A DNA stretch of 64,000 bases from Paramoeba atlantica (taxonomy: Eukaryota > Protista > Discosea). The position numbers and the translations under genes are program-made. Shown one piece after another: positions 3,501-50,259 of the stretch (the first letter of the stretch is position 1; the number at the start of each line of letters is the position of its first letter). A model generated the notes under the pieces. It was not told the DNA's origin. It saw only the letters and a program-made list of their open reading frames with translations, and did no database searches. The DNA lies in assembly GCA_977017575.1 (NCBI GenBank), contig CDRNVI010000041.1, forward strand, positions 310,001-374,000, read 5' to 3'.

Positions 3501-4490
3501 ACGATCGCCCCCCCTTGTCACCCGATGATCTCCCCCCTACGTCATGCCCATTGTATGCAACGGAGGATTGCTTTGACGCGAAGCTGCCGGACTGGGCGAA
3601 AAAGGGTATCCCCCGCCAAAGGGACATAAGCCACGCGATTTCGGCTACGGAATTTTCGCGAGCTTATGAAAAGGCTGACGCCAGGACTCGCGCACGTTGG
3701 GTCTCCCAGAGCGGGAAAGGGGCCAATAGCTGGGCTTTCGTAACGCCATCCAAAGACACTGGTCACGCCTTCACCCCAACAGAATTCCGTACCTTGTCCC
3801 GCTGGTGGTTGGGGGTACCAGTCTACGGGGAAGAATCAAAATGCCCCAGGGAGAACTGCACGCTCCCCCTTGACATACACGGAGACCATGCTCTCACGTG
3901 TAAGCATGGGGAAGGTATCATCCGGCGACACCACTCGTTAGTCGATCAGTTTGCTGCCACCTGCAGCCAGGCCCACCTAGCACCCCAGCGCGAGAAAAGC
4001 CTCGGGAATAGGGGCCCAGGGGGTGCCTTGACCAGACCGGGGGACGTCTTCATGCCGAGCCTCTTCCTCGGAAAACCTATAGTGCTTGACTTCGCGGTCA
4101 CTCACGCCCAGCAATCAAAATACACGGACACAGTCCAAATGCTAGCTGGGTGCACATGTTCCAAATGCTAGCTGGGTGGCCGCGGGGTCTTTCGCTGAGC
4201 ACTACGCCTCCGACCAGAAAGCTCGACAGCGCCGTGAATCTGAGTCGGCGGGAAGCGACTTCACAGCAATGGTCGTAGAGAGCTACGGCTCTTGGAGCTC
4301 TAGTGCCTTAGCAGTACTTCGGAAAGTAGGAGAACGTCGGGCCAAAGCGTCCAACGGCATTCTCAGTGACGGAGCAACTACGTTACAGCTCGTCACAGAC
4401 TTGAACATAACGCTGATGCGTCGCCAGGCACGTATGATGATATCAAGAATGCCGGTAGACGACCTTCCCACTCCGCTGATCGAGCAATAG
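593..4490 (+). pseudogene. LsmAD-like + zinc fingers + RT + REL endonuclease polyprotein (family A)
   Basis: RPIAAGE, GVQQGDPLGPLFF, WYLDDG, GGFGLR, RHH, TRPGDV, LDFAVTH motifs. In-frame TGA at 1373-1375 where other copies have Cys; 26-nt duplication-insertion near 4135-4176 shifts the frame; NAFN is changed to NASN. Confidence 0.9.
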
Positions 4491-4830: not shown

Positions 4831-5059
4831 TGGATTGCTTCCTTTTTTATTATTATTGTTATCAGAATCATAAATAACTTAAGGCAGGTTGAATTACTAG
4901 TTTTGGGCTACAACATGTGAAATTGCTAATTTGCTTGCTTGTTTACAAATCATATACCCCCCCCAATGGACCTTCATGGTTCATGTATTGGGTAATATAG
5001 AGGCAATGCCGCGTTTCATACTTCTCCCCCCTTATTAATCGCATAAAAAAAAAAAAAAA

Positions 5060-6595: not shown

Positions 6596-6875
6596 TTGAG
6601 GAGTCGCCTGCAGGCCGGGTGAGGCGAAGCTGAGGGAGACCTTACCCCCCTGAAAAGTTGAAAAGTTGGGTAGGGGAAAGCAGGAAAGTAGGGAGAAAGG
6701 TGGGAAAAGTATGTCAAGAGGTGAGAAAGAGGAGAAAGAGAGAGAAAAATTTTCTTTATTTGCATAAAAACAATATAAAAAAAAAAAAAAACTTCAATTT
6801 GCGCCGTATGCTCAATGGAGGCTTTTTCAAATAAATTCGGATTTCTCGAGAGTTTGACAAAAAAAAAAAAAAAAA
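6596..6875 (+). repeat. Purine-rich 3' tail (type P1) + poly(A) + 68-nt segment + poly(A)
   Basis: The same tail recurs at 11341-11537, 21766-22036 and 50015-50182. Confidence 0.75.
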
Positions 6876-6906
6876 CGAATAAAGATACAGTTTCTGTACC
6901 TTGTTG
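6876..6906 (+). other. SL exon nt 13-42 (one extra A) at the head of element B
   Basis: poly(A) then CGAATAAAGATACAGTTTCTGTACCTTGTTG. Confidence 0.85.
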
Positions 6907-6937: not shown

Positions 6938-9900
6938 ATGGTCACAACCCGATCCAAAGCTAAGCAGGGCACAGGTTTCGAACGAGAAGCGAACGAGCAT
7001 GAGCTAGGGTCATGGAATCAATTTGAAGCAAACAAACATCTCGTGGAGGGAGTAAGCACATACGATGAGAGTCTATATACCACTCCTCTCCCACGCGATC
7101 CCTCGTCTGAATTGTCGGAACGTGCCGAAAAGATTGCCCGCGACATTAAAGACTCGGTAGAAGGTGAAACGCCAGACACAGGGCACCAGAACACAGCCAC
7201 CGAAGAAGAACTTTTCTCTAGCATCCTCCCGGCCGTGAGTTCGTCGACCGAGAGTTCCGAGTTTCAGTTTGAAGGAACCCACCCATCTTCACTCAGCCAG
7301 CTCAAAAAATCTAATCAGGCTGTGAAGGGGAAGGTCCTCAGGTCGAGCCGCTCCGAATACGACTATGAGGAAAATAAGTTAGCATTTCCCGATCTTACAC
7401 CTCCGGATCTCGATTTCTCAGTGGCCAAAAGTTGTAGAGGACGCAAAAAGAAGAAACGCCCGAAGGGTATCACTCTCTCCCAGTTGAGTACGAGGCTCGG
7501 GGCTACTGTCGAGCTGAGTGCCGAGTCCGGGGTGGACAGCGAAGACCGGGACAACACAGACTCCATTTTGAACTCCTCCAAGCCATGTACTCCTGTAGCA
7601 GAACATGTGGACAACTCCTCGGGAGAAATGTTCCACGACGGACGGAACCGAACCACATCGCCAGGGAAACGTAAACGTCACTAGGTGTCGAAAATCAGGC
7701 CCGCCGAGCCCATGGGCGCCGAGAAACCCCACCACATAGCCAAGACACTCCACGCTACACGAGAAGAGGCATCCACGAGAAGAGGGCATCCACGAGAAGA
7801 GGCATCCATCGAAAATGTAAACGTACGGAAGTGCCATTTCCAGGGATGCGTATGGAAAACATTGTCTCACGGGGGGCAGTGGCAAGCATTCTATAACCAC
7901 ATAGCCCACAGACACGGGGACCAGGTCCCGGATACGTGGTGGATAGAAGAAGGTCGCTTTCTTTGCAAGGAGTGCAACAAACACTATGACCTAGGCAAAC
8001 GGGACACGCACACGAAGAGTTGCACGTCCCGCCGTTCACTACCTCAAATCCCACAGACAACCCCTCCGAGCAGCAACATCATCCCTGCAGCGAATCCTCA
8101 TCTTAATGACACCCCCCAACCAGATCTTCGCGCGGCCTCCGCACCAGCTGACCAATCCACGGAAAGTCAGAGCGCCCAGGTCGATCTACCCCTTCCGAGT
8201 TTATCTTCCGTGAGCGCTCTGCCAATAAATACTTGCAAGGACATCCCAGATAGCTGCCGACAAGAATGGGCCAAGACGCTTTGTGGATGTATATCCACGG
8301 CGATCTGCGAAAACACACTCCAAGCGTGGACGCTTCTCGCCATGTTGCCCAAGTGCGTTTTACCTGCCCCCCACCGCGGAGGTAACCGCGCGAAAGCGTC
8401 GTACGCTTCCCATGTGAAGAAGTGTCTAGCTAGATGGCGCAATGGAGAATTCTTAGCGCTATGGAACGAAGCGGTTTCTAGTCTCGTACGGAAAAAGAAA
8501 AGTGTAGCACAAGCGCAAGACATTGACGACGAAATCAAGAAAGCGGCTTTACGCGCTAAACGGCTTGTTCGCGACTCGGAGCTTTCTCGCGCTATGACTG
8601 CCCTGACTTCTGAACCTCTCGCCCCTGACGATGAAGCGACCCATGCGAAACTCCTGTCTAAGCACCCACCCAGACTCTCCACCTCCAACGTGGACTGCTT
8701 TCCGGCTCGGGACGTTGAGCCACTTAAAGCGACTGAGGAAGAAGTGGCCGAAGCTCTTTCCAACTTTCACCGAGGGTCCTCAGGTGGGGCCTTTGGTCTG
8801 CGACCCGAGCACCTTCAGACAGCCATGCAATATCATCACGACGCTTATACCGACCCTCTGGGCACTCTCACTAAGTTCGTCAACCACATGCTCGCAGGAA
8901 AAGTGCCGTTAGAAGTCAAAGGTCACTATGCAGGTGGTCGATTGTGCGCCCTGAAGAAAGGGGAACGTGACGTACGCCCTATTGCCGCAGGGGAAACTCT
9001 TCGTCGCCTGACAAGCAAAGTAGCCTGCTTCGCGGCTAAAGAACAACCCCGCAAACTTTTCAAAGGACACCAGTATGGTGTAGCCACACCTGCGGGTTCA
9101 GAGCGTGTGATACATCTCTGCCGGAAGACCATCGCTGAACACATTGACGACGACGACTTCATACTTTGTAAAGTCGATCTAAAAAACGCATTTAATAATG
9201 TTTCGCGAGATTCTTTTACGGCCCTAGCGCGCCGCCACTTCCCTAAACTGGGTTGCTATGTGGAATGGTGCTACAATGCGGGAAGCATTCTTACCTTTGG
9301 TTCCCGGACCATCGAATCCTCCGAAGGGGTACAGCAAGGCGACCCGCTTGGACCTCTTCTTTTCTCACTGGTCATGAAAGAAGTCGCATGGAAAATCCGT
9401 GTGGCCGCCCCAAACCTCGACCTCAACATGTGGTTCTTGGATGACGGGGTACTAGCAGGACCATCTTGCGACGTACGGCATGCTCTAGACGTGATTGCGA
9501 TAACCGGCCCAAAATGGGGATTACACCTCAACGTAGCAAAGTGCGAGCTTATATCACACCCCGCTTCCTCCCACCGTTATTCCCTTTTCCCCGACATTCC
9601 CGGTTTGAACAAAAATGGGGAAGGTAATTTCCATATTTTGGGGAGCCCGGTTGGATCCACCCAATTTTGCCGAGAGTTCTTCCTCAAAAACGCAATCGAC
9701 TTAGCCGAAGAGTCGTTGGAGGCCATAACCACGCTTGATGATCCCCAGATTGCATTGTCTCTGATCCGACACTGTACAGGTTTCTGTCAAATGGTGTACT
9801 CTCTCAGATCCACTCCGACCGCTGAACTACAGGATATCTGCAAACGCCTAGACGATGCCGTCCAGCGTACCACTGAACACTTCTTTCGCCCTCTGAGCGA

Positions 9901-11056
9901 TGGGGCCCGACGCCAGGCGCAACGTGAAAACCGGTACGGGGGGTTGGGGCTCCGGTCAGCGGAGGAACACGCGAGTTCCGCCTACGTAGCCTCCGTCGCT
10001 TTTGCATCAAACAAAGACCGGTGGGACCCAGAGGACGCTGAGGGGTTCACCCAAGCTGTTCGGGAGGTCAACAAACGCACCGGGACGGCAGTCATCGAAC
10101 AGTGCGGATTAATATCAAAAAGCCTCGCATTGTCGATGACCACGCTTAACTCGAATAACGATGCACAAGAACCTAGCACAGAGCTGGTAATTCCTCGCCA
10201 ACGCGATCTGAGTCATGCCATCGCTTCCTACGAATTTCGGGAGTCGTTTGCTCGTGCCGACCTTCGAACGAGGGCCAGATGGACATCGGAAACGGGAGAA
10301 GGGGCCTCGGAGTGGGCTTTCGTAATCCCCTCCAAGAAAAGCGGCTTAGCCTACACACCGACTGAATTCCGTACTCTTGTGCGTTGGTGGCTCGGGGATA
10401 CTATTTACCCAGCTTTCCGGCCCTGTCCTCTGGAGAAATGCTCGTTGCCGCTTGACCCCGAGGGTGACCACGCACTGGTATGCAAGTGCGGGCACGGCAT
10501 AATCGCACGGCACAACGCCATTGCGGGACAGTTCACAACAGAGTGTGCCAAAGCCGGGTTTACCCCACGGCGAGAAGTGAGTCTGGGGAATACGGGCCCC
10601 GGAGGCACCCTCACCAGGCCAGCGGACGTATTTCTTTCCACATTCGACGTAGGCCAGTCTCTCGTATTAGACTTCGCTGTCACTCACGTCCAGCAGCCAA
10701 AGTATACGGACTTAGTCCGTGACGCTAACTGGGTGGCAGCGGGGTCTTTCGCGGAGCGCTACGCGACGGAAAACAAAAAGAAACAAAGAGAGGAAGCAGA
10801 AGCCGCACGCCACAGGTTTAGTGCTATGGTGGTGGAGACCTACGGGGCATGGAGTCCCAGTGCCTTCGCCATTCTCAAGGAGGTAGCTGCTTCACGGTAA
10901 GCGTACTCCGGGGGACTCTCGAAGGGTGAAGCCCTTCATCAACTGGTGACAACGCTGAACGTCGCCCTCATGAGGACACAAGCTCGTATGCTTGTACTGC
11001 GCCTCCCCGCAGCCTCCCCCGATATCTGTGTTAATGGGTACGGGAACGAAGAGTAG
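6938..11056 (+). pseudogene. CRE-like family B polyprotein (LsmAD-like, C2H2/CCHC fingers, RT, REL) with two in-frame stops
   Basis: One frame throughout with TAG at 7682-7684 and TAA at 10898-10900 (TCA in the copy at about 52277); RT and REL motifs otherwise intact. Confidence 0.9.
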
Positions 11057-15049: not shown

Positions 15050-16790
15050 ACAGTGTGTAGCTACAGTGGCCCTTGAGAGAGTGAGAGCAGTGCCACGTGA
15101 GGCAGTGATTGCACAGTGATGCAGTGCAGCTGCAGTGGCACGTGCCAGAGTAAGTGCACTTCCATGTGAGGCAGTGACTGCAGTGATGCAGTGTAGCTGC
15201 AGTGGCACGTGCCAGAGTAAGTGCACTGCCATGTGAGGCAGTGACTGCAGTGATGCAGTGTAGCTGCAGTGGCACGTTCCAGAGTAAGTGCACTGCCATG
15301 TGAGGCAGTGACTGCAGTGATGCAGTGTAGCTGCAGTGGCACGTGAGAGAGTAAGTGCACTGCCATGTGAGGCAGTGACTGCAGTGATGCAGTGTAGCTG
15401 CAGTGGCACGTGAGAGAGTAAGAGTAGGGCCACGTGAGGCAGTGACTGCAGTGATGCAGCGCAGCTGCAGCGGCACGTGCGAGAGTAAGATTACTGCCAC
15501 GTGAGGCAGTGAATGCAGTGTAGATACAGTGGAATGTGAGAGAGTCAGTGACTCGCGGGCGTAGTTGGTAGACGGTGGGCCTTACAACCTGCAGGTTGTT
15601 GGTTCGATTCCCGCTATCGACAAAACTCGCAACCTGGCGGCCTCACTACAAAGGGAAAGCGATCAGGAGTGCCTTCAAGGCCCACACCCAACCCCGCTCC
15701 CCTGTAGGACCGACCCGGAACCGCCGAGCTGAACCAGGCTCCAGCGCAGCCGCTAAATTGCGAGCTGCTTACGCAAAGGAGGCTTGAGACACAGCCTACA
15801 TGATGCAACGGGGTTGGGCGCCCGTCCTGGTAGCTACGGTTGGGTAGCCGTGCTCGGGCCGCAAGGCGTCGAGTGCCGTCTGGGAAGGGGGTAGCAAGAC
15901 GATGAAGGTCGGTGTCCTGAGACTCTACCCTAACGGTTGGCGCTGCAGAGCCCTCCGTGTTCTTCTCTTCTCTAAGATTACTGCCACGTGAGGCAGTGAA
16001 TGCAGTGTAGATACAGTGGAATGTGAGAGAGTCAGTGACTGCAGTGTAGCTACAGTGGCACGTGAGAGAGTAAGATTACTGCCACGTGAGGCAGTGACTG
16101 CAGTGATGCAGTGCAGCTGCAGTAACACGTGAGAGAGTGAGAGTACTTCCACGTGAGGCAGTGACTGCAGTGATGCAGTGCAGCTGCAGTAACACGTGAG
16201 AGAGTGAGAGTACTGCCACGTGAGGCAGTGACTGCAGTGTAGCTGCAGTAGCACTTGAGAGAGTAAGTGTACTGCCACGTGAGGCAGTGACTGCAGTGTA
16301 GCTTCAGTAGCACGTGAGAGAGTGAGAGTACTGCCACGTGAGGCAGTGATTGCAGTGTAGATACAGTGGCAGAGTGACAGGCAGTGCCACGTGAGGCAGT
16401 GACTGCAGTGATGCAGTGCAGCTGCAGTAGCACGTGAGAGAGTAAGATTACTGCCACGTGAGGCAGTGAATGCATCGGCACTGTACCTACAGTGGCACGT
16501 GAGAGAGTGAGAGCAGTGCCCCGTGAGGCAGTGATGCAGTGTAGCTGCAGTGGCACGTGAGAGAGTAAGAGCAGTGCCACGTGAGGCTGCAGTGTAGTTG
16601 ACTGCAGTGTAGCTGCAGTAGCACGTGAGAGAGTGAGAGTACTTCCACGTGAGGCAGTGATCGCAGTGCAGCTGCATTGGCACGTGCGAGAGTAAGAGTA
16701 GTGTCACGTGAGGCAGCGACTGCAGTGTAGATACAGTGGCACGTGAGAGAGTAAGTGTACTGCCACGTGGGGCAGTGACTCACGTTGAGT
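15050..16790 (+). repeat. 59-67 bp minisatellite rich in CAGTG/CACGTG, interrupted at about 15550-15975
   Basis: Unit CAGTGGCACGTGCCAGAGTAAGTGCACTGCCATGTGAGGCAGTGACTGCAGTGATGCAGTGTAGCTG, period 67 (15133, 15200). Confidence 0.9.
15550..15621 (+). promoter_or_regulatory. Second tRNA-like box A/box B sequence
   Basis: GCGTAGTTGGTAGA ... GGTTCGATTCCC ... TCGACA, ending like the copy at 14802. Confidence 0.4.
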
Positions 16791-21465: not shown

Positions 21466-22436
21466 CGAACCCTGCCTCGGCACACCAAACTGCTCTTTTT
21501 TCCGATATTCCGGAACCCAAGATAAACCGCGAAGGAAATTTTGACATTCTTGGGAGCCCCATAGGCTCTGCTCAACATTGCATAGATTTCCTTACGACAC
21601 ACGCCGTGGAACCGGCAGAAGAGACCCTGGAAGCTATAGAAATGCTCGAAGATCCTCAAATTGCCTTGTCATTGATCAGACAGTGTGCGGGTTTTTGTCA
21701 AATGGTCCATTCGCTTCGAACTACCCCACCACATGAGCTTTCTGCACTCTGTCAGCGCCTTGATGGCCGGGTGAGGCGAAGCTGAGGGAGACCTTACCCC
21801 CCCTGAAAAGTTGAAAAGTTGGGTAGGGGAAAGCAGGAAAGTAGGGAGAAAGGTGGGAAAAGTATGTCAAGAGGTGAGAAAGAGGAGAAAGAGAGAGAAA
21901 AATTTTCTTTATTTGCATAAAAACAATATAAAAAAAAAAAAAAAAACTTCAATTTGCGCCGTATGCTCAATGGAGGCTTTTTCAAATAAATTCGGATTTC
22001 TCGAGAGTTTGACAAAAAAAAAAAAAAAAAAAAAAACGAACCCTGCCTCGGCACACCAAACTGCTCTTTTTTCCGATATTCCGGAACCCAAGATAAACCG
22101 CGAAGGAAATTTTGACATTCTTGGGAGCCCCATAGGCTCTGCTCAACATTGCATAGATTTCCTTACGACACACGCCGTGGAACCGGCAGAAGAGACCCTG
22201 GAAGCTATAGAAATGCTCGAAGATCCTCAAATTGCCTTGTCATTGATCAGACAGTGTGCGGGTTTTTGTCAAATGGTCCATTCGCTTCGAACTACCCCAC
22301 CACATGAGCTTTCTGCTCAAGGAAGTAGGGTAAAAGGTTTTAAGTGGTGGAAAGTTCGAAACGTAGATATAAACATTAGAATCAATACTAAAAAAAAAAA
22401 AACAATATAAAATTGCAAAAAAAAAAAAAAAAAAAA
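21466..22436 (+). mobile_element. Stack of short fragments: C (21466-21765), P1 tail, C (22037-22316), P2 tail, with poly(A) tracts
   Basis: Both C pieces start at the same CGAACCC nucleotide; the tails match 6613-6875 and 52680-52760. Confidence 0.85.
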
Positions 22437-25410
22437 ACCTCCCCTGGAAGAAGAAGCTTTAAAACTGGACGAATCCGAGGTAAGAAAAGCAGTAGATACC
22501 TTCCGTCGCGGATCCTCTGCTGGGACTATGGGGCTCCGGCCTGAACACCTCCAAACAGCGCTTCAAGAGCACGTCGACCAGAATATGAATCCTCTTACGA
22601 CGCTCACTTCCTTCGTAAACCATCTCCTAGCTGGCAAAGCCCCAGACGAAGTGCAACCTTTTTTTGCAGGGGCACGGCTATGCGCACTCGAAAAAGGGGA
22701 AGATGACGTGCGTCCTATCGCTGCGGGGGAAACCCTTAGACGTCTGGTGAGCAAGGCAGTGTGCCTTTCGATAAAAGAAAAAGCAGGATCCTTCTTTGGA
22801 CGTCGTCAATACGGGGTCGCAGCGTCTGCTGGGGCGGAAAGAGTGATACACCTTTGTCGCCGTCTAATGAGAAATAATGAAGAAAATGAGAACATAACGT
22901 TCTGTAAGGTGGATCGTAAGGTGGATCTTCGGAACGCCTTTAATAACGTGAGCCAACCCGTCTTCATCTTTCTCACACGAAAGCATTTCCCTGAACTATC
23001 CCCATGGGTAGAATGGTGTTATGCCAATCACAGCTGTCTCACATTCGGCAATGATTTTATCCCCTCGGCAGAAGGAGTGCAACAAGGAGACCCTCTGGGC
23101 CCACTCCTCTTCTCCTTGGTGTTAGCAGAGGTAACAGAAGAAATTGCATCAAATTCTAACCTACGAACACAATTATGGTATTTAGATGACGGTGTGCTTG
23201 TAGGTGAGCCCAAAGAAGTCCGTAAAGCCCTAGACGTCCTCGACGAGATAGGGCCGAAGTGGGGACTCTTCCTGAATCTCTCCAAGTGCGAGGTCATTAC
23301 CCCCCCAGCATCAGCTCATACCTCCGTTTTCTTTCCTGACATCCCCAGCGATAAAATACGGTACGACGGGAACTTCGACATTCTTGGAAGCCCAATAGGC
23401 TCTGCGGAACACTGTGCGGAGTTTCTCATGACACACGCGATTGAACCAGCCCGCGAAACATTAGAAGCTACTGCTGTGTTAGAAGATCCCCAAATAGCTC
23501 TCGCACTAATACGGCAATGTTCGGGGTTTTGTCAGATGGTGTACGCACTGCGCACCACTCCTCCCCAAGCCCTTGGAGAATTATGCCAAAAACTTGACTC
23601 TCATCTAGTCCAGGCCGTGGAGCACGCAATTTCTCCCTTAGGCGTCGCCGCTCGCGACCAAATACAACGACCAAAACGCCACGGCGGGTTCGGACTTCGC
23701 TCATCAATTCTCCACCAGTCAGCAGCCTACGTTTCTTCCGTCGCGCACGCCGCTAGCTTGGACAACTGGGACCCCACAGAAGCTGAGGGATTTTCCAGCT
23801 CAGCACATGACATAAATGACAAAGTTGGGACTGATCTGGTTGATCCATACACTGGACGCATTACCAAACCTAGTGTGCCTGGTGAATATCATGCAAATCG
23901 GAGCATCCTTTCCCGCCCAGCGAAAAGAAAACTCGCACAATCCCTCAATCACGCCCTTCTCCCGGTCTCGACGGATCAGGAAAAGATCATCCCGAGGCAA
24001 AAACATCTCAGCCAAGCTATCTCGGATAGGGAATTTCAAACGGCATATTCAAAGGCAGACGCAAGAACGCGGGCGCGATGGATCTCGCAGTCCGGAAAAG
24101 GGGCCGGAAACTGGGCTTTCGCAACTCCCTCCAAGACCAGAGGCTACGCTTTCACCCACACGGAGTTTCGTACCCTAACACGCTGGTGGCTAGGCATGGA
24201 CGTCTTCCCCGAAGATCGGCCTTGCCCAGCTGACGGGTGCACCCTTCCCTTGCTCAAGAATGGAGAGCACGCTTTGCTCTGCAAGAACGGCCATGGTATC
24301 ATCTCACGGCACAACGCTCTGGCCCAACAATTTACATCGTTCTGCAGCAGTGCCTTCCTGGCGCCACAGAGAGAGAAGAGTTTGGGAAATCGGGGTCCTG
24401 GGGGGGCTCTCACGAGACCAGCAGACGTATTTCTGCCAACTGCCTCCATCGCCAAAGGATCTTTAGCGCAAGGCATGGTCCTAGATTTTGCGGTCACTCA
24501 CGCACAGCAAACAAAGTATTTGGACTCAGTCCACAATGCTAGCTGGGTGACCCCGGGGTCTTTTGCCGAGCACTTCGCGGAGACCAAGGCGCGACAGCGA
24601 CAAGAAGCAGAAAAAGCAGGACACCTCTTCACAGCGATGGTGGTGGAATCCTTTGGTTCCTGGAGCGAGAGTGCGCTAGCGTTACTCCGGGACATCGGAA
24701 CCCAACGGGCGAATGCATCCAAAGGGCTCCTTTCACGAGACCAAGCGCGAAACGATCTCCTAACAGATCTGAACGTGACGCTAATGCGTTCTCAAGCCAG
24801 GATGATGGTTTCGCGCATCCGCGTAGAGGACCCAGCGGATCCTTTGGTAGAGGCTTAAGCCTCTACTGACAGTCCTATTTCAGCACGAAGACGCCATGGT
24901 ATCCAGGACGGGTGCTGGTCGGGTCGACAGAGTCTATGCTCACGCCTAGCCCGCGAGGGCTAGGTACCCCAAGTGAGGTAGTACACGGGTAGTGAATCTC
25001 CTCCCCGTCGACCAGCATCCTGTTTCGCGACCGTGTCGCTGTCGACACAGGCCCGCGCCTGCGCCCTCCCACATAACAAGGGAAGGGTTCACAAGTCAGG
25101 CCGTGGAGTGGTCGAAAGACCCGGTCCGGAACGCGCGAATGGATTGGGTCTGTATTGCTTGTTTTAGTTTTTACTGTTTCTTGTTTGTAGTATATACTTA
25201 GGGGAGATTAAATTGCTAGTTTTGGGCTGAGAAAAAACAAAAGGTACATCTGTGGAAACAAAAAGAATTGCTAATTTGATTGCTTGTTTTCAACTCGTAT
25301 ACCCCCCCCAATGGACCTACTTGGTTCGTCTACTGGGTCAAAATATAGAGGCAATGCCGCGATTCATACTTCTCCCCCCTTATTAACTGCAAAAAAAAAA
25401 AAAAAAAAAA
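22437..25410 (+). mobile_element. 5'-truncated CRE-like family F element
   Basis: Open frame to 24858 with full RT and REL motifs; in-frame 12-nt duplication (KVDRKVDL); 3' module at about 24910-25145; poly(A) 25391-25410. Confidence 0.9.
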
Positions 25411-25412
25411 GA

Positions 25413-25454
25413 AACTAACTTTAACGATAAAGATACAGTTTCTGTACCTTGTTG
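25413..25454 (+). other. Complete 42-nt SL exon at the head of element E
   Basis: AACTAACTTTAACGATAAAGATACAGTTTCTGTACCTTGTTG begins with the canonical AACTAAC; no upstream SL-gene sequence and no intron. Confidence 0.88.
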
Positions 25455-25498
25455 ACTTATTTTAATTATCCCACTTTTTTCCCTGGGAGGGTATAACC

Positions 25499-28400
25499 AT
25501 GCCACAAGACGACCTTTTCGACGCGAACACATTACCTATGGACGACGACTCTTTCCGCCAGGAAGAAAATTCTCACAACACGGGTGATTGGGACCAATTT
25601 GCAGGTAACGCACACTTAATCTCTGGACAGAGCTCCTACAATGAACTTCTATACACGACACCCATTCCCAAGAACATACCGAAACACTGGGCAGAAAGAG
25701 CCGCCAAGTTCGCTGGAGAGAATCCCACGCCTGACACGGGCAGAGTGACGGATAATGAAGAGACCAATCATTCTCGCGTTGTGGATGCGAGCGCAGGAAT
25801 CCCGCCTGAGGTCTCTGGCGCGAAAATTTCTTCTCCAAACAAGCGCAAGAACGCAAACCCGTTACCGTCTCTACAACACAGCCCGCAACGAGTATGTCCA
25901 GCGGAAGGATGCTCTTGGAAGACGCCTCCACATGGTGGACAATGGCAAGCGTATTACAACCATGTGGCCCACCGACACGGCGAAAGCGTACCCACAGACT
26001 GGTGGGAGGGAGAAGGAAGATTTCTCTGCAAAGATTGCGGCAGGCACTACGACAAAAACAAGGAAAAGGCTCACCCCAAGCACTGCAAAGGCTGCGACCA
26101 CCATGTCCGATCTCCAACCCCGCCTAGACCAACGACACGTCCTAGAAACGCAGAGGATGTTCCTCCGGAAAACCTGCTACCAACGCTAAGCTCTGTGTGC
26201 GCACTGCCCATAAGCAAATGTAAAGACGTCCCACATTCCTGTAGATTCCTATGGGCGAGCATTTTGACACAAGCCTTTACTACTGCTGTTCAAGAAAACA
26301 CGGTGGAGGCATGGACGTTACTCGCAATGCTCCCTAAATGCGTCTTACCTGCACCGTACCGAGGCGGACGCAAAGGACACATGTCGTATTCTACACATGT
26401 GGAAAAAAATATGGAGCTTTGGTTAGCAGGAGAGTACCTTTTACTCTGGGAACAGGCCCTGAAAGATCACGGAAAAAAACGCTCCAAGCCTAGAAATACC
26501 GAAAGTGAAGAAGATAGAGCAGCAATCAGGGCAGAACTCTTGGCACGTCAAGGGGAGTACTCTAGGGGAATGGCCGCCCTAACTGCAGCACCCATGGCGC
26601 CAGACAACGAGGAGACCCTCGCGAAGCTATTAGAAAAGCACCCAGAGCCACCCGAAAACCCACTCGAGAACAACATACCACCAATCGAGGGTAACCCCCT
26701 GCGCCTGGAGGAAGTGGAGGTCAGGAAAGCTATCGATAGTTTTCACAGAGGGTCTTCCGCCGGAACAATGGGTCTACGCCCCGAGCACATCCAGTCAGCC
26801 ATTTTGGAACACGTCGACAAGAATGTGAATCCTCTCTCGGCACTCACTCGCCTCGCGAACCATATGCTCCGAGGAAAGGCACCGCCAGAAGTTCAATTAT
26901 TCTACGCTGGAGCTCGTCTCTGCGCCCTTGAGAAAGGTGAGGGGGACGTCCGACCCATAGCAGCAGGCGAAACCCTCAGACGCCTAATAAGCAAAGCAGC
27001 ATGCATCGCCGTAAAGGAGAAGGCTGGAACTTTATTCCGAGGGCAACAATATGGTGTGGCAGCATCCGCGGGGGCCGAACGAGTAATTCATCTTTGCCGG
27101 AAAACAATGCTAAACAATTTGGGGAGCGACAGTTTTGTCATCTGCAAAGTGGACCTCAGAAACGCTTTCAACAACGTCAGCAGACCGGTATTCACTTTGC
27201 TCACACGCATGAACTTTCCAGAACTTTCACCTTGGGTAGAGTGGTGTTACAAAAGCCCGAGTTGTCTTACTTATGGAAACCACTTCCTATCCTCAGCCGA
27301 AGGCGTGCAACAGGGTGATCCATTGGGCCCGCTTCTCTTTTCTCTTGTCCTTTCTGAAATTACTACAGAAATATCATCCCGGTCAAACTTAGACTCTCAA
27401 CTATGGTATTTGGACGACGGGGTGCTCATGGGGGAGGCTGCGGAGGTACGAAAGGCGCTGAACGTTCTTTCCGAGTTTGGACCACGGTGCGGACTTTTCT
27501 TTAACCCAACGAAATGTGAAATTATTACACCACCTCCATCAGCCCATCTCACAACATTATTTCCCGAGATACCAACGGCAAAATCCCGAGTGGACGGGAA
27601 TTTCGACATTCTTGGATCCCCAATCGGGTCTTCAGAACATTGCGCGGAGTTCCTCATGTCACACGCCATTGATCCTGCACGTGAGACTCTAGCTGCGATT
27701 GGGCTAATAAAAGACCCACAAGTCGCCATCGCCCTAATTCGCCAATGCACAGGTTTTTGTCAAATGGTGTACGCACTCCGCACCACACCCCCGCAGGCTC
27801 TTTCCCAGCTTTGTAGTATACTTGATGAAAACGTTTTAACAGCCGTGGAGTGGGCACTTTTTCCCCTGGAACCCCACGCACGAGACCAAATCCAACGCAG
27901 GAAGCGTCATGGAGGTTTCGGCCTCAGGTCTTCAACACTTCATGCATCAGCCGCTTACGTTTCTTCCGTTGCGCACGCCGCCGATATGGATGACTGGGAC
28001 CCTACAGAGGCTGACGGATTTACTGCCTCGGTAAAAGATGTAAACAGTAAGGCAGGAGTATCTCTAGTGGACCCTATTACGGGGCGCACACCAAAGCAGA
28101 ACAAGTCACACCATGACTCAGGCCAACGTCACAATTTCCTCTCGAAAAGAAAACGCCCACGGTGTACGCTCAACAAAATGGAGGCAGACAGGGCGACAGA
28201 GCCGGAGATGGTCATCCCCCGGCAGCAACAGCTCAGCCAGGCTATCTCCCAACAGGAATTCACCACAGCCTACGGGCAGGCCGACCCCCGCACGCGCGCA
28301 CGATGGGTCTCGCAGTCGGGGAAGGGAGCTGGCAGCTGGGCTTTTGTCACGCCCTCTAGGAACAAAGGATACGCTTTCACACCCACCGAGTTCCGCACGC

Positions 28401-29077
28401 TATCACGCTGGTGGCTAGGCTCCGATATTTACCAACAAGATCGACCTTGTCCCGCAAAAGGATGCGCATCACCCTTGCAGAGAGATGGGGAACATGCCTT
28501 GCTATGCAAGAACGGACACGGCCTCATCACCAGGCATAACGCGGTGTGCGAACAATTCGCCTCATTTTGCAGGAAAGCCGACATGGCACCACAAAGGGAA
28601 AAAATCCTGGGAAACAGGGGACCTGGAGGGGGTCTCACCAGGCCCGCCGACGTGTTCATACCCAACTTCACCCTGGGAAATGGTATGGTGTTAGACTTCG
28701 CAGTCACCCACGCACAGCAACTAAAGTATTTGGACTCCGTCCGAAATGCTAGCTGGGTGGCTGCGGGGTCTTTCGCTGAACATTACTCAACAACGAAGAA
28801 TACCCAACGTCAGGAAGCGGAAAAGGAAAACTTACTCTTCACCGCCATGGTGGTTGAGTCCTTTGGGTCGTGGAGCAAAAGTGCTCTAGCAGTCTTGTGG
28901 AAGGTGGGGGCGCTACGCGCCAGTGCGTCTAATGGTCTTCTTACTGACACACAGGCTCGAAATGAACTCTTAAAAGAGTTGAACGTGACGCTCATGCGCT
29001 CACAGGCCCGAATGATGGTCTCCAGGTTGGTCGTAAGTGACCCCAGCGCCCCCTTGGAAGGGGCCTCACTCTCATGA
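25499..29077 (+). CDS. Intact CRE-like retrotransposon polyprotein, family E (1192 aa): LsmAD-like, zinc fingers, RT, REL
   Basis: ATG 45 nt after the SL; CPAEGC...HVAHRH finger; CKDC...H...C; RT motifs KVDLRNAFN, QQGDPLGPLLF, WYLDDG; C-terminal C..GC...H...C, RHN, RPADV, LDFAVTH. Confidence 0.93.
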   Translation: MPQDDLFDANTLPMDDDSFRQEENSHNTGDWDQFAGNAHLISGQSSYNELLYTTPIPKNIPKHWAERAAKFAGENPTPDTGRVTDNEETNHSRVVDASAGIPPEVSGAKISSPNKRKNANPLPSLQHSPQRVCPAEGCSWKTPPHGGQWQAYYNHVAHRHGESVPTDWWEGEGRFLCKDCGRHYDKNKEKAHPKHCKGCDHHVRSPTPPRPTTRPRNAEDVPPENLLPTLSSVCALPISKCKDVPHSCRFLWASILTQAFTTAVQENTVEAWTLLAMLPKCVLPAPYRGGRKGHMSYSTHVEKNMELWLAGEYLLLWEQALKDHGKKRSKPRNTESEEDRAAIRAELLARQGEYSRGMAALTAAPMAPDNEETLAKLLEKHPEPPENPLENNIPPIEGNPLRLEEVEVRKAIDSFHRGSSAGTMGLRPEHIQSAILEHVDKNVNPLSALTRLANHMLRGKAPPEVQLFYAGARLCALEKGEGDVRPIAAGETLRRLISKAACIAVKEKAGTLFRGQQYGVAASAGAERVIHLCRKTMLNNLGSDSFVICKVDLRNAFNNVSRPVFTLLTRMNFPELSPWVEWCYKSPSCLTYGNHFLSSAEGVQQGDPLGPLLFSLVLSEITTEISSRSNLDSQLWYLDDGVLMGEAAEVRKALNVLSEFGPRCGLFFNPTKCEIITPPPSAHLTTLFPEIPTAKSRVDGNFDILGSPIGSSEHCAEFLMSHAIDPARETLAAIGLIKDPQVAIALIRQCTGFCQMVYALRTTPPQALSQLCSILDENVLTAVEWALFPLEPHARDQIQRRKRHGGFGLRSSTLHASAAYVSSVAHAADMDDWDPTEADGFTASVKDVNSKAGVSLVDPITGRTPKQNKSHHDSGQRHNFLSKRKRPRCTLNKMEADRATEPEMVIPRQQQLSQAISQQEFTTAYGQADPRTRARWVSQSGKGAGSWAFVTPSRNKGYAFTPTEFRTLSRWWLGSDIYQQDRPCPAKGCASPLQRDGEHALLCKNGHGLITRHNAVCEQFASFCRKADMAPQREKILGNRGPGGGLTRPADVFIPNFTLGNGMVLDFAVTHAQQLKYLDSVRNASWVAAGSFAEHYSTTKNTQRQEAEKENLLFTAMVVESFGSWSKSALAVLWKVGALRASASNGLLTDTQARNELLKELNVTLMRSQARMMVSRLVVSDPSAPLEGASLS

Positions 29078-29099
29078 GTGAGGTTCTCCAATGTGAGCC

Positions 29100-29340
29100 C
29101 GGATGCTGGTCGTGTCGACAGAGTCTATACTCACGCCTAGCTCGCGAGGGCTAGGTACCCCAAGTGAGGTATTACACGGGCAGTGAATCTCCTCCCCGTC
29201 GGCCAGCATCCTGTTTCGCGACCGTGTCGCTGTCGACACAGGCCCGCGCCTGCGCCCTCCCACATAACAAGGGAAGGGTTCACAAGTCAGGCCGTGGAAA
29301 GGTCGAAAGACCCGGTCCGAAGCGCGCGAATGGATTGGGC
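29100..29340 (+). ncRNA. Conserved 3' RNA module copy (family E)
   Basis: Same helices; CCTAGCTC-GCGA-GGGCTAGG with a G-U substitution; poly(A) 29536-29556. Confidence 0.75.
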
Positions 29341-29610
29341 ATGGATTGCTTGCTTTAATTTTTACTGTTTCTTGTTTGTAGTATATACTTAGGGGAGAGT
29401 AAATCGCTAGTTTTGGGCTGAGAAAAAAAGAAAAAGAAAATATACTTCTGTGGAAATAAAAAGAATTGCTAATTTGATTGCTTGTTTTAAATTCATATAC
29501 CCCCCTAATGGACCTACTATGTACTTGGTTCGTCTAAAAAAAAAAAAAAAAAAAAAGAGCGGACGGGGTCCTGGGGTATGGAGGTTGTCCCTATAATTTT
29601 GGAAGGTTAT

Positions 29611-30709: not shown

Positions 30710-31950
30710 TGTGTAGCTACAGTGGCCCTTGAGAGAGTGAGAGCAGTGCCACGTGAGGCAGTGATTGCACAGTGATGCAGTGCAGCTGCAGTGGCACGTG
30801 CCAGAGTAAGTGCACTTCCATGTGAGGCAGTGACTGCAGTGATGCAGTGTAGCTGCAGTGGCACGTTAGAGAGTAAGTGCACTGCCATGTGAGGCAGTGA
30901 CTGCAGTGAGGCAGTGTAGCTGCAGTGGCACGTGCCAGAGTAAGTGCACTGCCATGTGAGGCAGTGACTGCAGTGATGCAGTGTAGCTGCAGTGGCACGT
31001 GCGAGAGTAAGTGCACTGCCATGTGAGGCAGTGACTGCAGTGATGCAGTGTAGCTGCAGTGGCACGTTAGAGAGTAAGTGCACTGCCATGTGAGGCAGTG
31101 ACTGCAGTGATGCAGCGCAGCTGCAGCGGCACGTGCGAGAGTAAGATTACCGCCACGTGAGACAGTGAATGCAGTGATGCAGTGCAGCTGCAATAGCACG
31201 TGAGAGAGTGAGAGTACTGCCACGTGAGGCAGTGATGCAGTGTAGCTGCAGTGGCACGTACGAGAGTAAGAGTAGAGGCAGTGAATGCAGTGCAGCTGCA
31301 ATAGCACGTGAGAGAGTGAGAGTACTGCCACGTGAGGCAGTGACTGCAGTGTAGCTGCAGTGGCACGTGAGAGAGTGAGAGTACTGCCACGTGAGGCAGT
31401 GACTGCAGTGTAGATACAGTGGAATGTGAGAGAGTCAGTGACTGCAGTGTAGCTACAGTGGAACGTGAGAGAGTGAGAGTACTGCCACGTGAGGCAGTTA
31501 CTGCAGTGTAGCTGCAGTAGCACGTGAGAGAGTGAGAGTACTGCCACGTGAGGCAGTGACTGCCGTGTAGATACAGTGGAATGTGAGAGAGTCAGTGACT
31601 GCAGTGTAGCTACAGTAGCACGTGAGAGAGTGAGTGTACTGCCACGTGAGGCAGTGACTGCAGTGTAGATACAGTGGAATGTGAGAGAGTCAGTGACTGC
31701 AGTGTAGATACAGTGGCACGTGAGAGAGTAAGTGTACTGCCATGTGAGGCAGTGACTGCAGTGATGCAGTGTAGCTGCAGTGGCAGGTGAGAGAGTAAGT
31801 GCACTGCCATGTGAGGCAGTGACTCCAGTGCAGCTGCATTGGCACGTGCGAGAGTAAGAGTAGTGTCACGTGAGGCAGCGACTGCAGTGTAGATACAGTG
31901 GCACGTGAGAGAGTAAGTGTACTGCCACGTGGGGCAGTGACTCACGTTGA
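30710..31950 (+). repeat. 59-67 bp CAGTG minisatellite, second array
   Basis: Same unit as 15050-16790, without the internal insert. Confidence 0.9.
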
Positions 31951-45556: not shown

Positions 45557-45716
45557 GCTTAAGGATCTACACCCGGAGGGATAACGTCATTAGTTCCCTT
45601 GCTCTTCAGAAGAACACCGAAAGGTTTAAAAAAAAAAAAAAAAGATGACGAAGTAAAAAATGTATTTGATAGATTACGAGAGGAAAAAAAAAAAAAAAAA
45701 AAAAAACGATAAAGAT

Positions 45717-45752
45717 CTTTAACGATAAAGATACAGTTTCTGTACCTTGTTG
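45717..45752 (+). other. SL exon (nt 7-42) at the head of element C, preceded by a duplicated CGATAAAGAT
   Basis: poly(A)-CGATAAAGAT-CTTTAACGATAAAGATACAGTTTCTGTACCTTGTTG. Confidence 0.85.
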
Positions 45753-45797: not shown

Positions 45798-48700
45798 ATG
45801 CCCACATCCGTTGAAGAGCAAAATCCGACCTTCGAGGAGGAGGCGTCGTCTCACACACTTGGGTCCTGGGATCAATTTGCGGCAAACAAATCTTTAGCGA
45901 AGGGACCTAGCACGTACGATGAGCTAATCTACACCACAGCCCTCCCTAATGATATTCCTCAGGACTGGGAAAAGAGAACGGACGAAATCCTTCGAAGTAT
46001 GAAGACGGCAACGCAGGACTCAACGCCAGATTTGGGGCATGCGAATGAACTATCAAGTGAAAGAACCGAGGAAGAGATACACTGCAGTGTGCGTCGGGAC
46101 GATGAACCTTCCCCTTTCCATTTCGAGGGAACGCACTCAAATTCACCCAGCCAATTACAAACTTCAAACAGGGCTGTGAAGGAGAGATGCCTGCGTCGAA
46201 CAAGGAGAATGGAAGGTGCCGTTGACACAGAGAACGCGATGATGTTTCCAGACCTCACGCCTACTGAACTTGACTTCACAATCACAACAAAACGCAAAGG
46301 TAGGAGAAAGAAGAAACGAATAAAACGAACGGCAACGACGTGTACTGACGGTACCAACTCTTCAAGCCCCGAGGGTGACGAGCACGAAGACAGCGTGACA
46401 CCTGAGCCCACTCAAAACGGTAAACAAAAGCGCCGCCGAGAAATAGCGAAAAGCTTCTCGAATTATTTTCCTACGACAGGTCACCGGACAGACAAAACAC
46501 CAAGCGGCAAATCCCAACTTCCTCCGTCTGTAGCCGCATTCCGCAACACGCCTCAGGACTCTTTGAAAACTTGCCCAGTTAAAGGGTGCGTGTGGAAAAC
46601 ACTCGCTCATGGCGGCAGGTGGCAAGCTTACTACAACCACGTAGCTACAAGACACGCGAATGAAGTGCCCGAATCCTGGTGGACGAACGAAGGGCGCTTT
46701 CTCTGCCAGAAATGCGGGCGACATTACGAAGAAGGCAAACGAGCAACACACGACAACGCTTGCAAAGGAACCTCGACTGACTCTGTAGCCAATCCCGCGA
46801 ATAACTTGACGCAGAGTTCATTGGACCACGGTTCGCGCAGCACCGATGTCTCACAGAGTGTCCAACCTCTTCCTTTACCATCGCTTTCTGATATTTGCAT
46901 GACTCCTATCAACACTTCTAGGGATGTTCCATTCCGATGCCGCTACCAATGGGCGAAAACGCTCACCGATGTATTATCCTCCGTAGCCAGCGAGAACTCC
47001 GTAGCGGCATGGACCCGTCTCGGCATGCTGCCTAAATGCGTTCTACCGGCCCCGAACCGCGGGGGGCGCAAAGGTCGTCTTTCTTATGCCTCACATGTGA
47101 CAAAAAGCCTAGAAAGGTGGGGAAAAGGGGAATTTACCGCTCTGTGGATTGAAGCGACCAAAAACAACACGAAGTCGTCGCACCCATCAACCAAAGACCA
47201 AGATCAAGACCAGGAGCTTGCGCAAGAAGTAAGAAGGGCAAAAGAACGATGCGAAAAACTTGTACGCCAGGGTGAAGTCTCTCGTGGAATGAGTGCACTA
47301 ACGGCGGCACCCTTTGCACCTGACAACGACGAAACGTACTGCAAGTTGATGGCAAAGCATCCCACTCGTGCGCAGGACTGCATGCTTCAAGATCTCCCGT
47401 ACCCTAACGCACCTCCCTTGAAAGTAAACGAAGAAGAAGTTAAGCACGCTTTGGGCAGCTTTCGCAAGGGATCATCTGGCGGAACGATGTCGCTGAGAGC
47501 TGAGCACCTTCAGATAGCACTACGTGCCCACGTGGACGAGAAAGTACACCCTCTCACCGCTCTTACAGACGTAGTCAATGTGCTTCTTTCTGGAAAAGCT
47601 CCATTCGAGATTCAGGAACGTTTCGCTGGGGCCAGATTGTGTGCACTTCAGAAAGGAGAATGTGACGTCCGACCTATAGCCGCAGGCGAGACAATCCGTC
47701 GTTTGGTTGGTAAAGTGGCATGTCTAACAGCCAAGAAAAAAGCTAGTCGCTTGTTTAAAGGAATACAGTATGGGGTTGCTACGCCAGCCGGATCGGAGAG
47801 GGTGATCCACCTCTGCCGACAGACTATGTCCCGCCATGCCGATGACACGAACTTTGTGCTATGTAAGGTGGACCTAGCGAACGCGTTCAATAGAGTATCC
47901 AGATCTGCGTTCATCGCCTTACTTCGCAAACATTTTCCAGAATTGTCAGCATGGGTGGAGTGGACCTACTCCACGGATAGTCTCCTAACTTACGGTTCCA
48001 GAACTCTTCCATCATCCGAGGGGGTTCAACAAGGGGACCCCCTAGGGCCTCTCCTTTTTTCCCTCGTAATGCTCGAAGCCGCGAAAATGATCAAAGAAGC
48101 ACTCCCAGGCAGTCTCCAGCTTCACCTCTGGTACCTCGACGACGGGGTAATAGCCGGTAAGGCCGAAGACGTCAGTTTCGCTTTAGAGACTCTTTCTCGA
48201 GTTGGTCCTAAGTGGGGTCTTCACATCAATACCTCTAAATGCGAAATAATAACGAACCCTGCCTCGGCACACCAAACTGCTCTTTTTTCCGATATTCCGG
48301 AACCCAAGATAAACCGCGAAGGAAATTTTGACATTCTTGGGAGCCCCATAGGCTCTGCTCAACATTGCATAGATTTCCTTACGACACACGCCGTGGAACC
48401 GGCAGAAGAGACCCTGGAAGCTATAGAAATGCTCGAAGATCCTCAAATTGCCTTGTCATTGATCAGACAGTGTGCGGGTTTTTGTCAAATGGTCCATTCG
48501 CTTCGAACTACCCCACCACATGAGCTTTCTGCACTCTGTCAGCGCCTTGATGAAGCAGTCCTCCATGCGTATGAATGGAACATATGCCCGCTTAGCTCCT
48601 CAGCTCGATCACAAGTTCAACGCCCGAAACGGTATGGAGGTTTTGGTCTCCGATCTGCATCTGCGCACCGCTCAGCGGCGTACGTGTCTTCAGTTGCTTT

Positions 48701-50014: not shown

Positions 50015-50259
50015 TTGAGGAGCCGCCTGCAGGCCGGGTGAGGCGAAGCTGAGGGAGACCTTACCCCCGCCCCCTGAAAAGTTGAAAAGTTGGGTAGGGG
50101 AAAGCAGGAAAGTAGGGAGAAAGGTGGGAAAAGTATGTCAAGAGGTGAGAAAGAGGAGGAAAAAAAAAAAAAAAAAAAAAATTTCGGAGATCGAATTGCT
50201 AGTTTTGGGCTCCAAAATATGAAATTGCTAAAAAAAAAAAAAAAAAAAAAAATGTGCAT

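Follow-up and report, generated by a model that had tools for sequence, protein, structure and literature searches.

Predicted R2/CRE-type LINEs with a spliced leader at the head of their genomic copies in a 64-kb poly(A)-to-head array

Analysis of a 64,000-nt stretch of Paramoeba atlantica DNA (GenBank assembly GCA_977017575.1, contig CDRNVI010000041.1, positions 310,001–374,000, forward strand; hereafter, the window) revealed four long interspersed nuclear elements (LINEs; elements A, B, D and E) with a spliced leader (SL) sequence at the start of each genomic copy, behind a poly(A) run. Each of these heads is probably the 5′ end of a full-length complementary DNA (cDNA) of LINE RNA that bore the spliced leader of the host. 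On balance, we also favor the view that the leader is a passenger mark of this RNA, and that arrays grow through template switching and through repeated use of poly(A) boundaries, not of the leader. The evidence comes from the window, a 64-kb piece of its contig, and from ~95 kb of related loci, ~160 kb being examined in total. The related loci were taken from ENA assembly ERZ24900291, which we treated as the organism's own assembly.

Leader-headed LINE copies

Exactly four copies of the 23-mer GATACAGTTTCTGTACCTTGTTG are present in the window, always on the + strand (520, 6884, 25432 and 45730), against none in the shuffled sequences used for the chance expectation. All four occurrences lie in heads of one plan. 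A run of 17–23 A directly precedes each head (with GA added in E and a partial leader copy in D), the leader is followed by A(A/C)TTATTTT and a pyrimidine-rich 5′ untranslated region (UTR; 64–77% pyrimidine), and the ATG lies 31–50 nt downstream. The leader is followed by GT in none of the four. An initial annotation of the window had described this poly(A)–leader–UTR–ATG order and the missing GT intron, and both hold, but its account of the heads needed correction: the first head starts at 507, the one at 6876 starts deeper in the leader, the full 42-mer is present at 25413 alone, and a leader relic precedes the D head.

The E head reads A20-GA-AACTAACTTTAACG..., in which the A20 (25391–25410) is the tail of an upstream 5′-truncated E-like element (22438–25410) and GA occupies 25411–25412. 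Its leader copy (25413–25454) consists of AACT plus AACTTTAACGATAAAGATACAGTTTCTGTACCTTGTTG, the last 38 nt being identical to the exon of an SL RNA gene described below, and is followed by a T-rich 5′ UTR (25455–25498; 64% pyrimidine) with a single AG at +34. In element A (head at 487–542), A20 is followed by a leader that opens with CTTTAACG (507–542); the AA of AACTTTAACG would be hidden within the poly(A). The D head (45684–45752) comprises A23, the 10-nt partial leader copy CGATAAAGAT (45707–45716) and a leader that likewise opens with CTTTAACG (45717–45752). The B head (6859–6906) has A17 and then CGA-A-TAAAG..., thus starting from the 9th/13th base of the leader with one extra A. An identical 67-nt tail plus poly(A) stands upstream of the B head and upstream of a truncated D copy that starts with CGAACCC (22014–22040). 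Because the extra A matches this CGAA start and the upstream tail and poly(A) are the same, the sequence suggests that the B head is a CGA(A) microhomology chimera.

Eight more leader copies were found in the related loci, i.e., seven heads and one 12-nt remnant. The heads include A31-CTTTAACG, A26-CT-CTTTAACG, A19-CT-CTTTAACG, A19-GCAG-CTTTAACG, A28-G-CTAACG... and A17-T-CTTTAACG (L016:3382–3440), the last with GTTG duplicated exactly at the leader/UTR joint. The remnant, the last 12 nt of the leader, adjoins an inverted 3′ module instead of poly(A) (L016:13100–13180). Overall, CTTTAACG at the cap-proximal end is the modal leader start, and five of the seven heads with this start have extra nucleotides between it and the poly(A) (CT, CT, GCAG, T and ...GAT). 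Leader bases 9–38 share 98.5% identity over nine heads, compared with 53% for the following 30 nt, and the leader/UTR joint is exact in nine of ten, the remaining one having the GTTG duplication. The leader head at L001:151–1281 belongs to a chimera in which the N-terminal region of a restriction-like-endonuclease family is joined to the C-terminal part and tail of another, F-like family.

Identity of the leader

The leader carries the hallmarks of euglenozoan spliced leaders, namely an AAC start, ACAGTTTCTGTAC, N4 and TTG, and the genome itself is read here as euglenozoan. A scan of metagenome contigs with a leader 19-mer returned five matches. Four were discarded as chance matches without leader context, and the fifth is the environmental contig JGI Ga0316204_10168667 (hereafter L014; 1,785 nt), which probably comes from the host itself or from a near relative. 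The ends of L014 overlap, giving a tandem unit with a ~1.8-kb period. It holds an SL RNA gene (...acgtagt/AACTTTAACGATAAAGATACAGTTTCTGTACCTTGTTG/GTATGAGAAGCTTCG..., then a GC-rich hairpin and a T-run) and, in the opposite orientation, a 5S ribosomal RNA gene (98 bits), and is thus a classical SL RNA/5S tandem repeat. The exon begins with AACTTTAACG, is 38 nt long and ends ...GTTG/GTATGAGAAGC at the intron start. Judged by this match, the leader core of the heads is a real spliced-leader exon, joined in the gene as ...CCTTGTTG/GTATGAG and in all heads as ...CCTTGTTG/A-N-T-T (with the extra GTTG at L016:3382).

An SL RNA gene of the kind sought by the initial annotation is thus present in an SL RNA/5S unit, perhaps from a close relative, and the proposed exon 3′ end (...GTTG) agrees with it. 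The proposed 42-nt leader was a real SL exon, but its length is in doubt. The L014 exon has only 38 nt, so the AACT that opens the 42-mer could be a terminal stutter; the unit suggests an exon of 38 nt and not 42 nt, with the proviso that it perhaps represents a close relative and not the host. With a 38-nt exon as in L014, the heads that open with CTTTAACG would be complete leaders or lack only AA. The E copy had been described as starting at SL nucleotide 1 without an SL promoter; the sequence 5′ of its leader is indeed unlike the upstream flank of the L014 SL gene, but the start at nucleotide 1 is less certain given the possible AACT stutter. An Rfam scan of the 64-kb window and a literature search for the leader sequence gave no match.

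The ENA assembly contains an SL intron half at L005:7419–7488, running from GT to ...GGGGCTTATT plus A7, with a compensatory hairpin change relative to L014. The surrounding retrocopy of the SL RNA intron half (L005:7392–7488) begins exactly at the GT and ends ...CTTATT plus A7, and the enzyme may here have copied a splicing product. Intron bases 4–11 (TGAGAAGC) occur three times around L005:7392–7488, flanking an inserted tail piece of 330 nt.

Origin of the leader on LINE RNA

Across the window and the related loci, 10 of 11 copies with a complete N-terminus have the leader, whereas all 19 truncated coding pieces lack it (0 of 19; Fisher p = 3.7e-7). The sole leaderless N-terminally complete copy (L005:9844) is truncated inside the UTR. 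It was considered as an unspliced source copy and rejected, being UTR-truncated and fused to a purine-rich tail-like piece. In the heads, the leader joins the UTR at the exon 3′ end without an intron, each copy ends in poly(A), and upstream of the leader there is neither a promoter nor a gene flank. As the leader core equals the SL exon, is fused to the UTR at the exon 3′ end and occurs only on 5′-complete copies, the junctions support a leader that is part of the retrotransposed unit and derived from RNA. The initial annotation had reached the same view, and the exact exon 3′ joint, the lack of intron and promoter and the 10/11 versus 0/19 distribution bear it out.

We propose that target-primed reverse transcription of leader-bearing LINE RNA started at existing poly(A) tails, or that the enzyme jumped between templates onto them. 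The 5′ end of a new copy would therefore be set against an older poly(A), and full-length products would retain the leader. The ragged leader start (AACT or CT stutter, loss of AA, extra G, T or GCAG) would then reflect the reverse transcriptase (RT) arriving at a capped, modified 5′ end, consistent with the known behavior of reverse transcriptases and of cap-4 leaders.

How the RNA came by its leader is an even choice between fresh trans-splicing in each cycle and inheritance with a shared 5′ module. The perfect conservation of the leader speaks for fresh trans-splicing, as does a 41%-identical relative in another environmental euglenozoan (L007), which reads ...TCTGTACTTTATTG/AAATT to poly(A) and has a different, canonical leader version, apparently that of its own host. 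The leader head at L006:4859, however, belongs to a LINE with an apurinic/apyrimidinic endonuclease (APE), an RT and RNase H. The N-terminus of this APE LINE is homologous to the LsmAD module found on the elements with a restriction-like endonuclease (37% over 102 aa, E 6e-19), so that the leader, the T-rich UTR and LsmAD form a 5′ module common to both LINE classes. With the module shared, the two classes are not independent witnesses.

Several observations weigh against our reading of the heads. Inheritance accounts better than repeated splicing for an A-N-T-T joint that all families share with the APE LINE and its homologous N-terminus. Existing copies have TTG, and not AG, before the UTR, which makes re-splicing at the same point impossible; in the ~160 kb, no source copy was found that keeps an AG acceptor at this junction in unspliced form. 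Two junctions (the B head and the D relic) fall at AA^CGA, presumably ~2 nt from the CRE/SLACS insertion point. Static junctions, moreover, cannot fully separate insertion at a poly(A) boundary from insertion just upstream of a leader head. Finally, three DNA-like public runs contain the region, and the sole RNA-labelled public run has nothing that maps to it.

The constant joint could also stem from master copies residing in genuine SL RNA genes behind an intact exon, transcribed from the SL promoter and passing on an inherited junction, the cDNA leader end having paired with the exon of the gene. The window copies would then be dead-end offspring, or would lie inside an SL locus with its flanks beyond the window. 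The persistence of the A-N-T-T junction from family to family and in the homologous 5′ module of the APE LINE is in line with this, as are the lack of AG before the UTR in every copy and the way in which relatives track the leader of their own host. SLACS transcripts, too, reportedly start at leader +1. Such an arrangement nevertheless seems fairly unlikely. The 64-kb window contains neither an SL intron nor a promoter-like flank nor a 5S gene, although the L014 unit repeats every 1.8 kb with its 5S gene; the flank of the E leader does not match that of the SL gene; and no such master copy was present in the ~95 kb of related loci. The initial annotation had itself allowed for an array inside the SL gene repeat. 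The composition of the window argues against this, although flanks of that kind could lie outside it.

We regard as very unlikely a route that bypasses the spliceosomal junction, in which the RT jumps end-to-end from the 5′ end of the element RNA onto a leader exon set free as an intermediate of splicing. Such a jump would need no AG, template switching is frequent in these loci, and the exact GT start of the SL intron-half retrocopy suggests that splicing products are within reach of the enzyme. At such joints, however, untemplated bases are usual, whereas nine of ten joints are exact (the other has the GTTG duplication), and free leader exons are rare and kept inside the spliceosome.

Poly(A) boundaries and leader sites in the array

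From end to end (1–64000), the window is made up of ~30 poly(A)-ended retrocopies stacked in one direction, all on the + strand and ranging from 8 nt to 9.6 kb. A census of poly(A) junctions in the window and five related loci placed 74 of 76 on one strand. Most adjoin randomly 5′-truncated, 3′-complete elements, and many 8–90 nt abortive pieces are among them. Tail-only tiny pieces and chimeric copies are common in the window and related loci, and these chimeras show that template switching is common as well.

The initial annotation had held that the copied leader regenerates a target and lets arrays spread, for which we found no good support. In this model, cleavage by the endonuclease within the leader (TAA^C) makes a fresh target of every full-length copy, and arrays spread from SL genes through mutual hits on heads. 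It draws on the predicted R2/CRE-type restriction-like endonuclease of the elements, on the poly(A) before every leader head, on the two junctions at poly(A)^CGA(A)TAAAG and on the 10-nt CGATAAAGAT before the D head, which could be a target duplication. The heads themselves argue otherwise: those read as cut at '6^7' would be near-complete leaders if the exon has 38 nt as in L014, and a modal start at the cap-proximal CTTTAACG with extra bases in five of seven heads is typical of a cDNA 5′ junction. Variation within the leader is likewise restricted to its cap-proximal bases. Left halves split off by insertion (AACTAACTTTAA plus foreign sequence) are absent from the window, where AACTAACTTTAA occurs once. 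Nor does leader sequence follow the poly(A) of A, B, D or E in the window, their tails adjoining other elements; the CGATAAAGATACAG expected after the D poly(A) is missing. The extra A of the B head recurs in the CGAA with which truncated D copies begin behind the same upstream sequence, and the 330-nt insertion at L005, with TGAGAAGC repeats on either side, lies at a poly(A) boundary that has the SL intron retrocopy, and no leader exon, downstream. Cutting within the leader is thus an improbable explanation.

A companion claim, that D contains a cryptic TAA^CGA target, fared no better. At this internal site (AAATAATAA/CGAACCC; 48244–48262, + strand), five poly(A)-preceded copies begin at the same C (5060, 17463, 19465, 21466 and 22037). 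They follow different poly(A) tails, and two of them (2,002 and 2,001 nt) form a tandem pair. Three structural variants are represented: a 2-kb form, a 481-nt internally deleted form and a 366-nt chimeric form. Five right halves are thus set against zero left halves in the 64 kb and in related loci. The TAA^CGA site behaves, as far as the junctions tell, as a recurrent RNA or cDNA 5′ end and not as a target that was hit. The CGAACCC start may be that of an abundant 5′-shortened RNA species, or a strong stop.

The copied leader could be functional, if it lets the cDNA end pair with leader exons (in SL genes or other heads) and is also recognized by the endonuclease, each full-length copy then being a landing pad. 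We think this unlikely; if true, leader-specific LINEs would escape their dependence on the SL locus and build arrays anywhere.

The GA at 25411–25412 could be a 2-nt target duplication or untemplated bases, and is weak evidence either way. GA is also present behind the poly(A) of E itself (29557–8), where it precedes GCGGACGGGG, with which an unrelated neighboring element of 7 kb begins that also ends in poly(A); depending on the copy, GA precedes this 5′ end 0, 1 or 2 times. Reading the GA as a copied cap, as the initial annotation had tentatively done, stays weak, the G not being adjacent to leader nucleotide 1. Both the cap copy and the target duplication of E were rejected as unsafe, as GA precedes GCGGACGG 0, 1 or 2 times elsewhere. 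The 7-kb element starting with GCGGACGGGG contains long tandem repeats with a period of ~67 bp (15055–16780 and 30711–31942). In the three DNA-like public runs, the word depth of the shared 3′ module (24891–25481 and 29028–29421) is 100–400 times that of the E coding body; this module is an extremely abundant repeat.

The elements and their proteins

E has a single, intact open reading frame (ORF) of 1192 aa (25499–29077, + strand), with an LsmAD-like N-terminus, two zinc fingers, an RVT_1 domain, and a CCHC motif with a restriction-like endonuclease (C-terminal block order CCHC...RHN...RPAD...D-F-A-V). Its poly(A) tail (29536–29556) is followed by GA and the 7-kb element, without a leader. 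The single D ORF (45798–49739; 1313 aa) is also intact, and its poly(A) (50160–50181) is followed by a 48-nt tail fragment without a leader. The coding regions of A (593–4171; poly(A) at 5045–5059) and B (6938–10900) each lie in one frame on the + strand and are interrupted by a TGA nonsense codon at 1373 and a TAG nonsense codon at 7682, respectively. Programmed readthrough of these stops was rejected, their positions being non-homologous.

The endonuclease motifs (C..C..H..C, RHN, E, RPxD and D-x-A-V) are kept across 8–12 aligned sequences. The last 292 residues of E gave a structure model with a predicted local distance difference test (pLDDT) score of 80.8, for which Foldseek returned R2 retrotransposon proteins (top seven, E 1.5e-5 to 5e-3). 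Searching PDB sequences with a profile of the endonuclease domain produced only noise, no CRE label came from the protein atlas, and the homology searches with the elements had no reference CRE sequences among their matches. From the motifs and the model, we classify the elements as putative R2/CRE-type LINEs with a restriction-like endonuclease.

The LsmAD-like (ataxin-2/PBP1) N-terminal module is present both on the restriction-like-endonuclease LINEs (25499–25800 of the window) and on the APE LINE (L006:4922–5300), while environmental relatives carry MLLE, the C-terminal domain of poly(A)-binding protein, in its place. Both domains appear to point to poly(A)-binding-protein biology. Close relatives of the elements were found solely in ENA assembly ERZ24900291, and distant relatives in environmental data amount to 1,524 cluster representatives at E <1e-30. 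A dinoflagellate genome (Polarella glacialis CAJNNV010028932.1) encodes a 30%-identical LINE relative, with no DinoSL within 4 kb of it.

Comparison with known systems

Leader-tagged retrogenes and leader-gene-specific LINEs are known; what appears to be new is LINE copies headed by a leader, as our literature search turned up no LINE described with a leader at the start of its genomic copies. If the leader is indeed a mark of the retrotransposed RNA, autonomous LINEs of a trans-splicing eukaryote would be using mature leader-bearing RNA as the template for retrotransposition, and the leader would come as a ready-made tag of full-length copies derived from RNA, as it does in dinoflagellate retrogenes. 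The absence of AG at the junction in any copy and the probable lack of gene-specific promoters in the organism raise the question of how the copies are re-expressed, and the answer bears on the origin of CRE-like leader-associated LINEs and on their relation to SL genes.

The array resembles the Zepp LINE clusters of Chlorella, which are said to be co-oriented stacks of often 5′-truncated copies joined to the poly(A) of an earlier copy. Here too the units are co-oriented and 3′-complete, with mostly truncated 5′ ends on the preceding poly(A), although the element class and host differ and the likeness is to Zepp as commonly described. End-to-end template jumping, reportedly a property of R2, is similar to the untemplated bases and chimeric copies of these loci. 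The C-terminal model matches R2 proteins (Foldseek E 1.5e-5; R2 structures 8gh6, 9dou and 9nl3), a likeness of predicted fold at ~15% sequence identity; unlike R2, the window elements are without a ribosomal DNA target.

The elements CRE1, SLACS and CZAR insert at one fixed position inside the SL exon. Trypanosomatid leader-gene-specific LINEs of the CRE clade have a single ORF with N-terminal zinc fingers, an RT, a C-terminal restriction-like endonuclease and a poly(A) tail (PMC12278014). The window elements share with this clade (CRE1, CRE2, SLACS and CZAR) the association with the SL and, as judged by domain order, the same plan: a single ORF with N-terminal zinc fingers and poly(A), intact in E and D, and a predicted endonuclease with CCHC, RHD/N and PD...D located C-terminal to the RT. 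Unlike the CRE elements, which reside inside the exon of genuine SL RNA genes, they carry the leader at their own 5′ end, fused to the UTR. Only 2 of the 76 junctions lie inside the leader (AA^CGA), and none shows a fixed insertion in a genuine SL exon with the exon remainder and intron after the poly(A). The copies form poly(A)-to-head stacks without an SL intron or promoter nearby and have an added LsmAD-like N-terminal domain.

In dinoflagellate retrogenes, a DNA-encoded relic leader at the 5′ end marks the copy of a trans-spliced, polyadenylated RNA (PMC5585692, PMC6050394 and PMC12014239). The leader of the window elements likewise seems to mark RNA-derived copies. Unlike those retrogenes, the 12 copies have no tandem relic leaders, the leader is of the euglenozoan type, and the templates would be the RNAs of autonomous LINEs.
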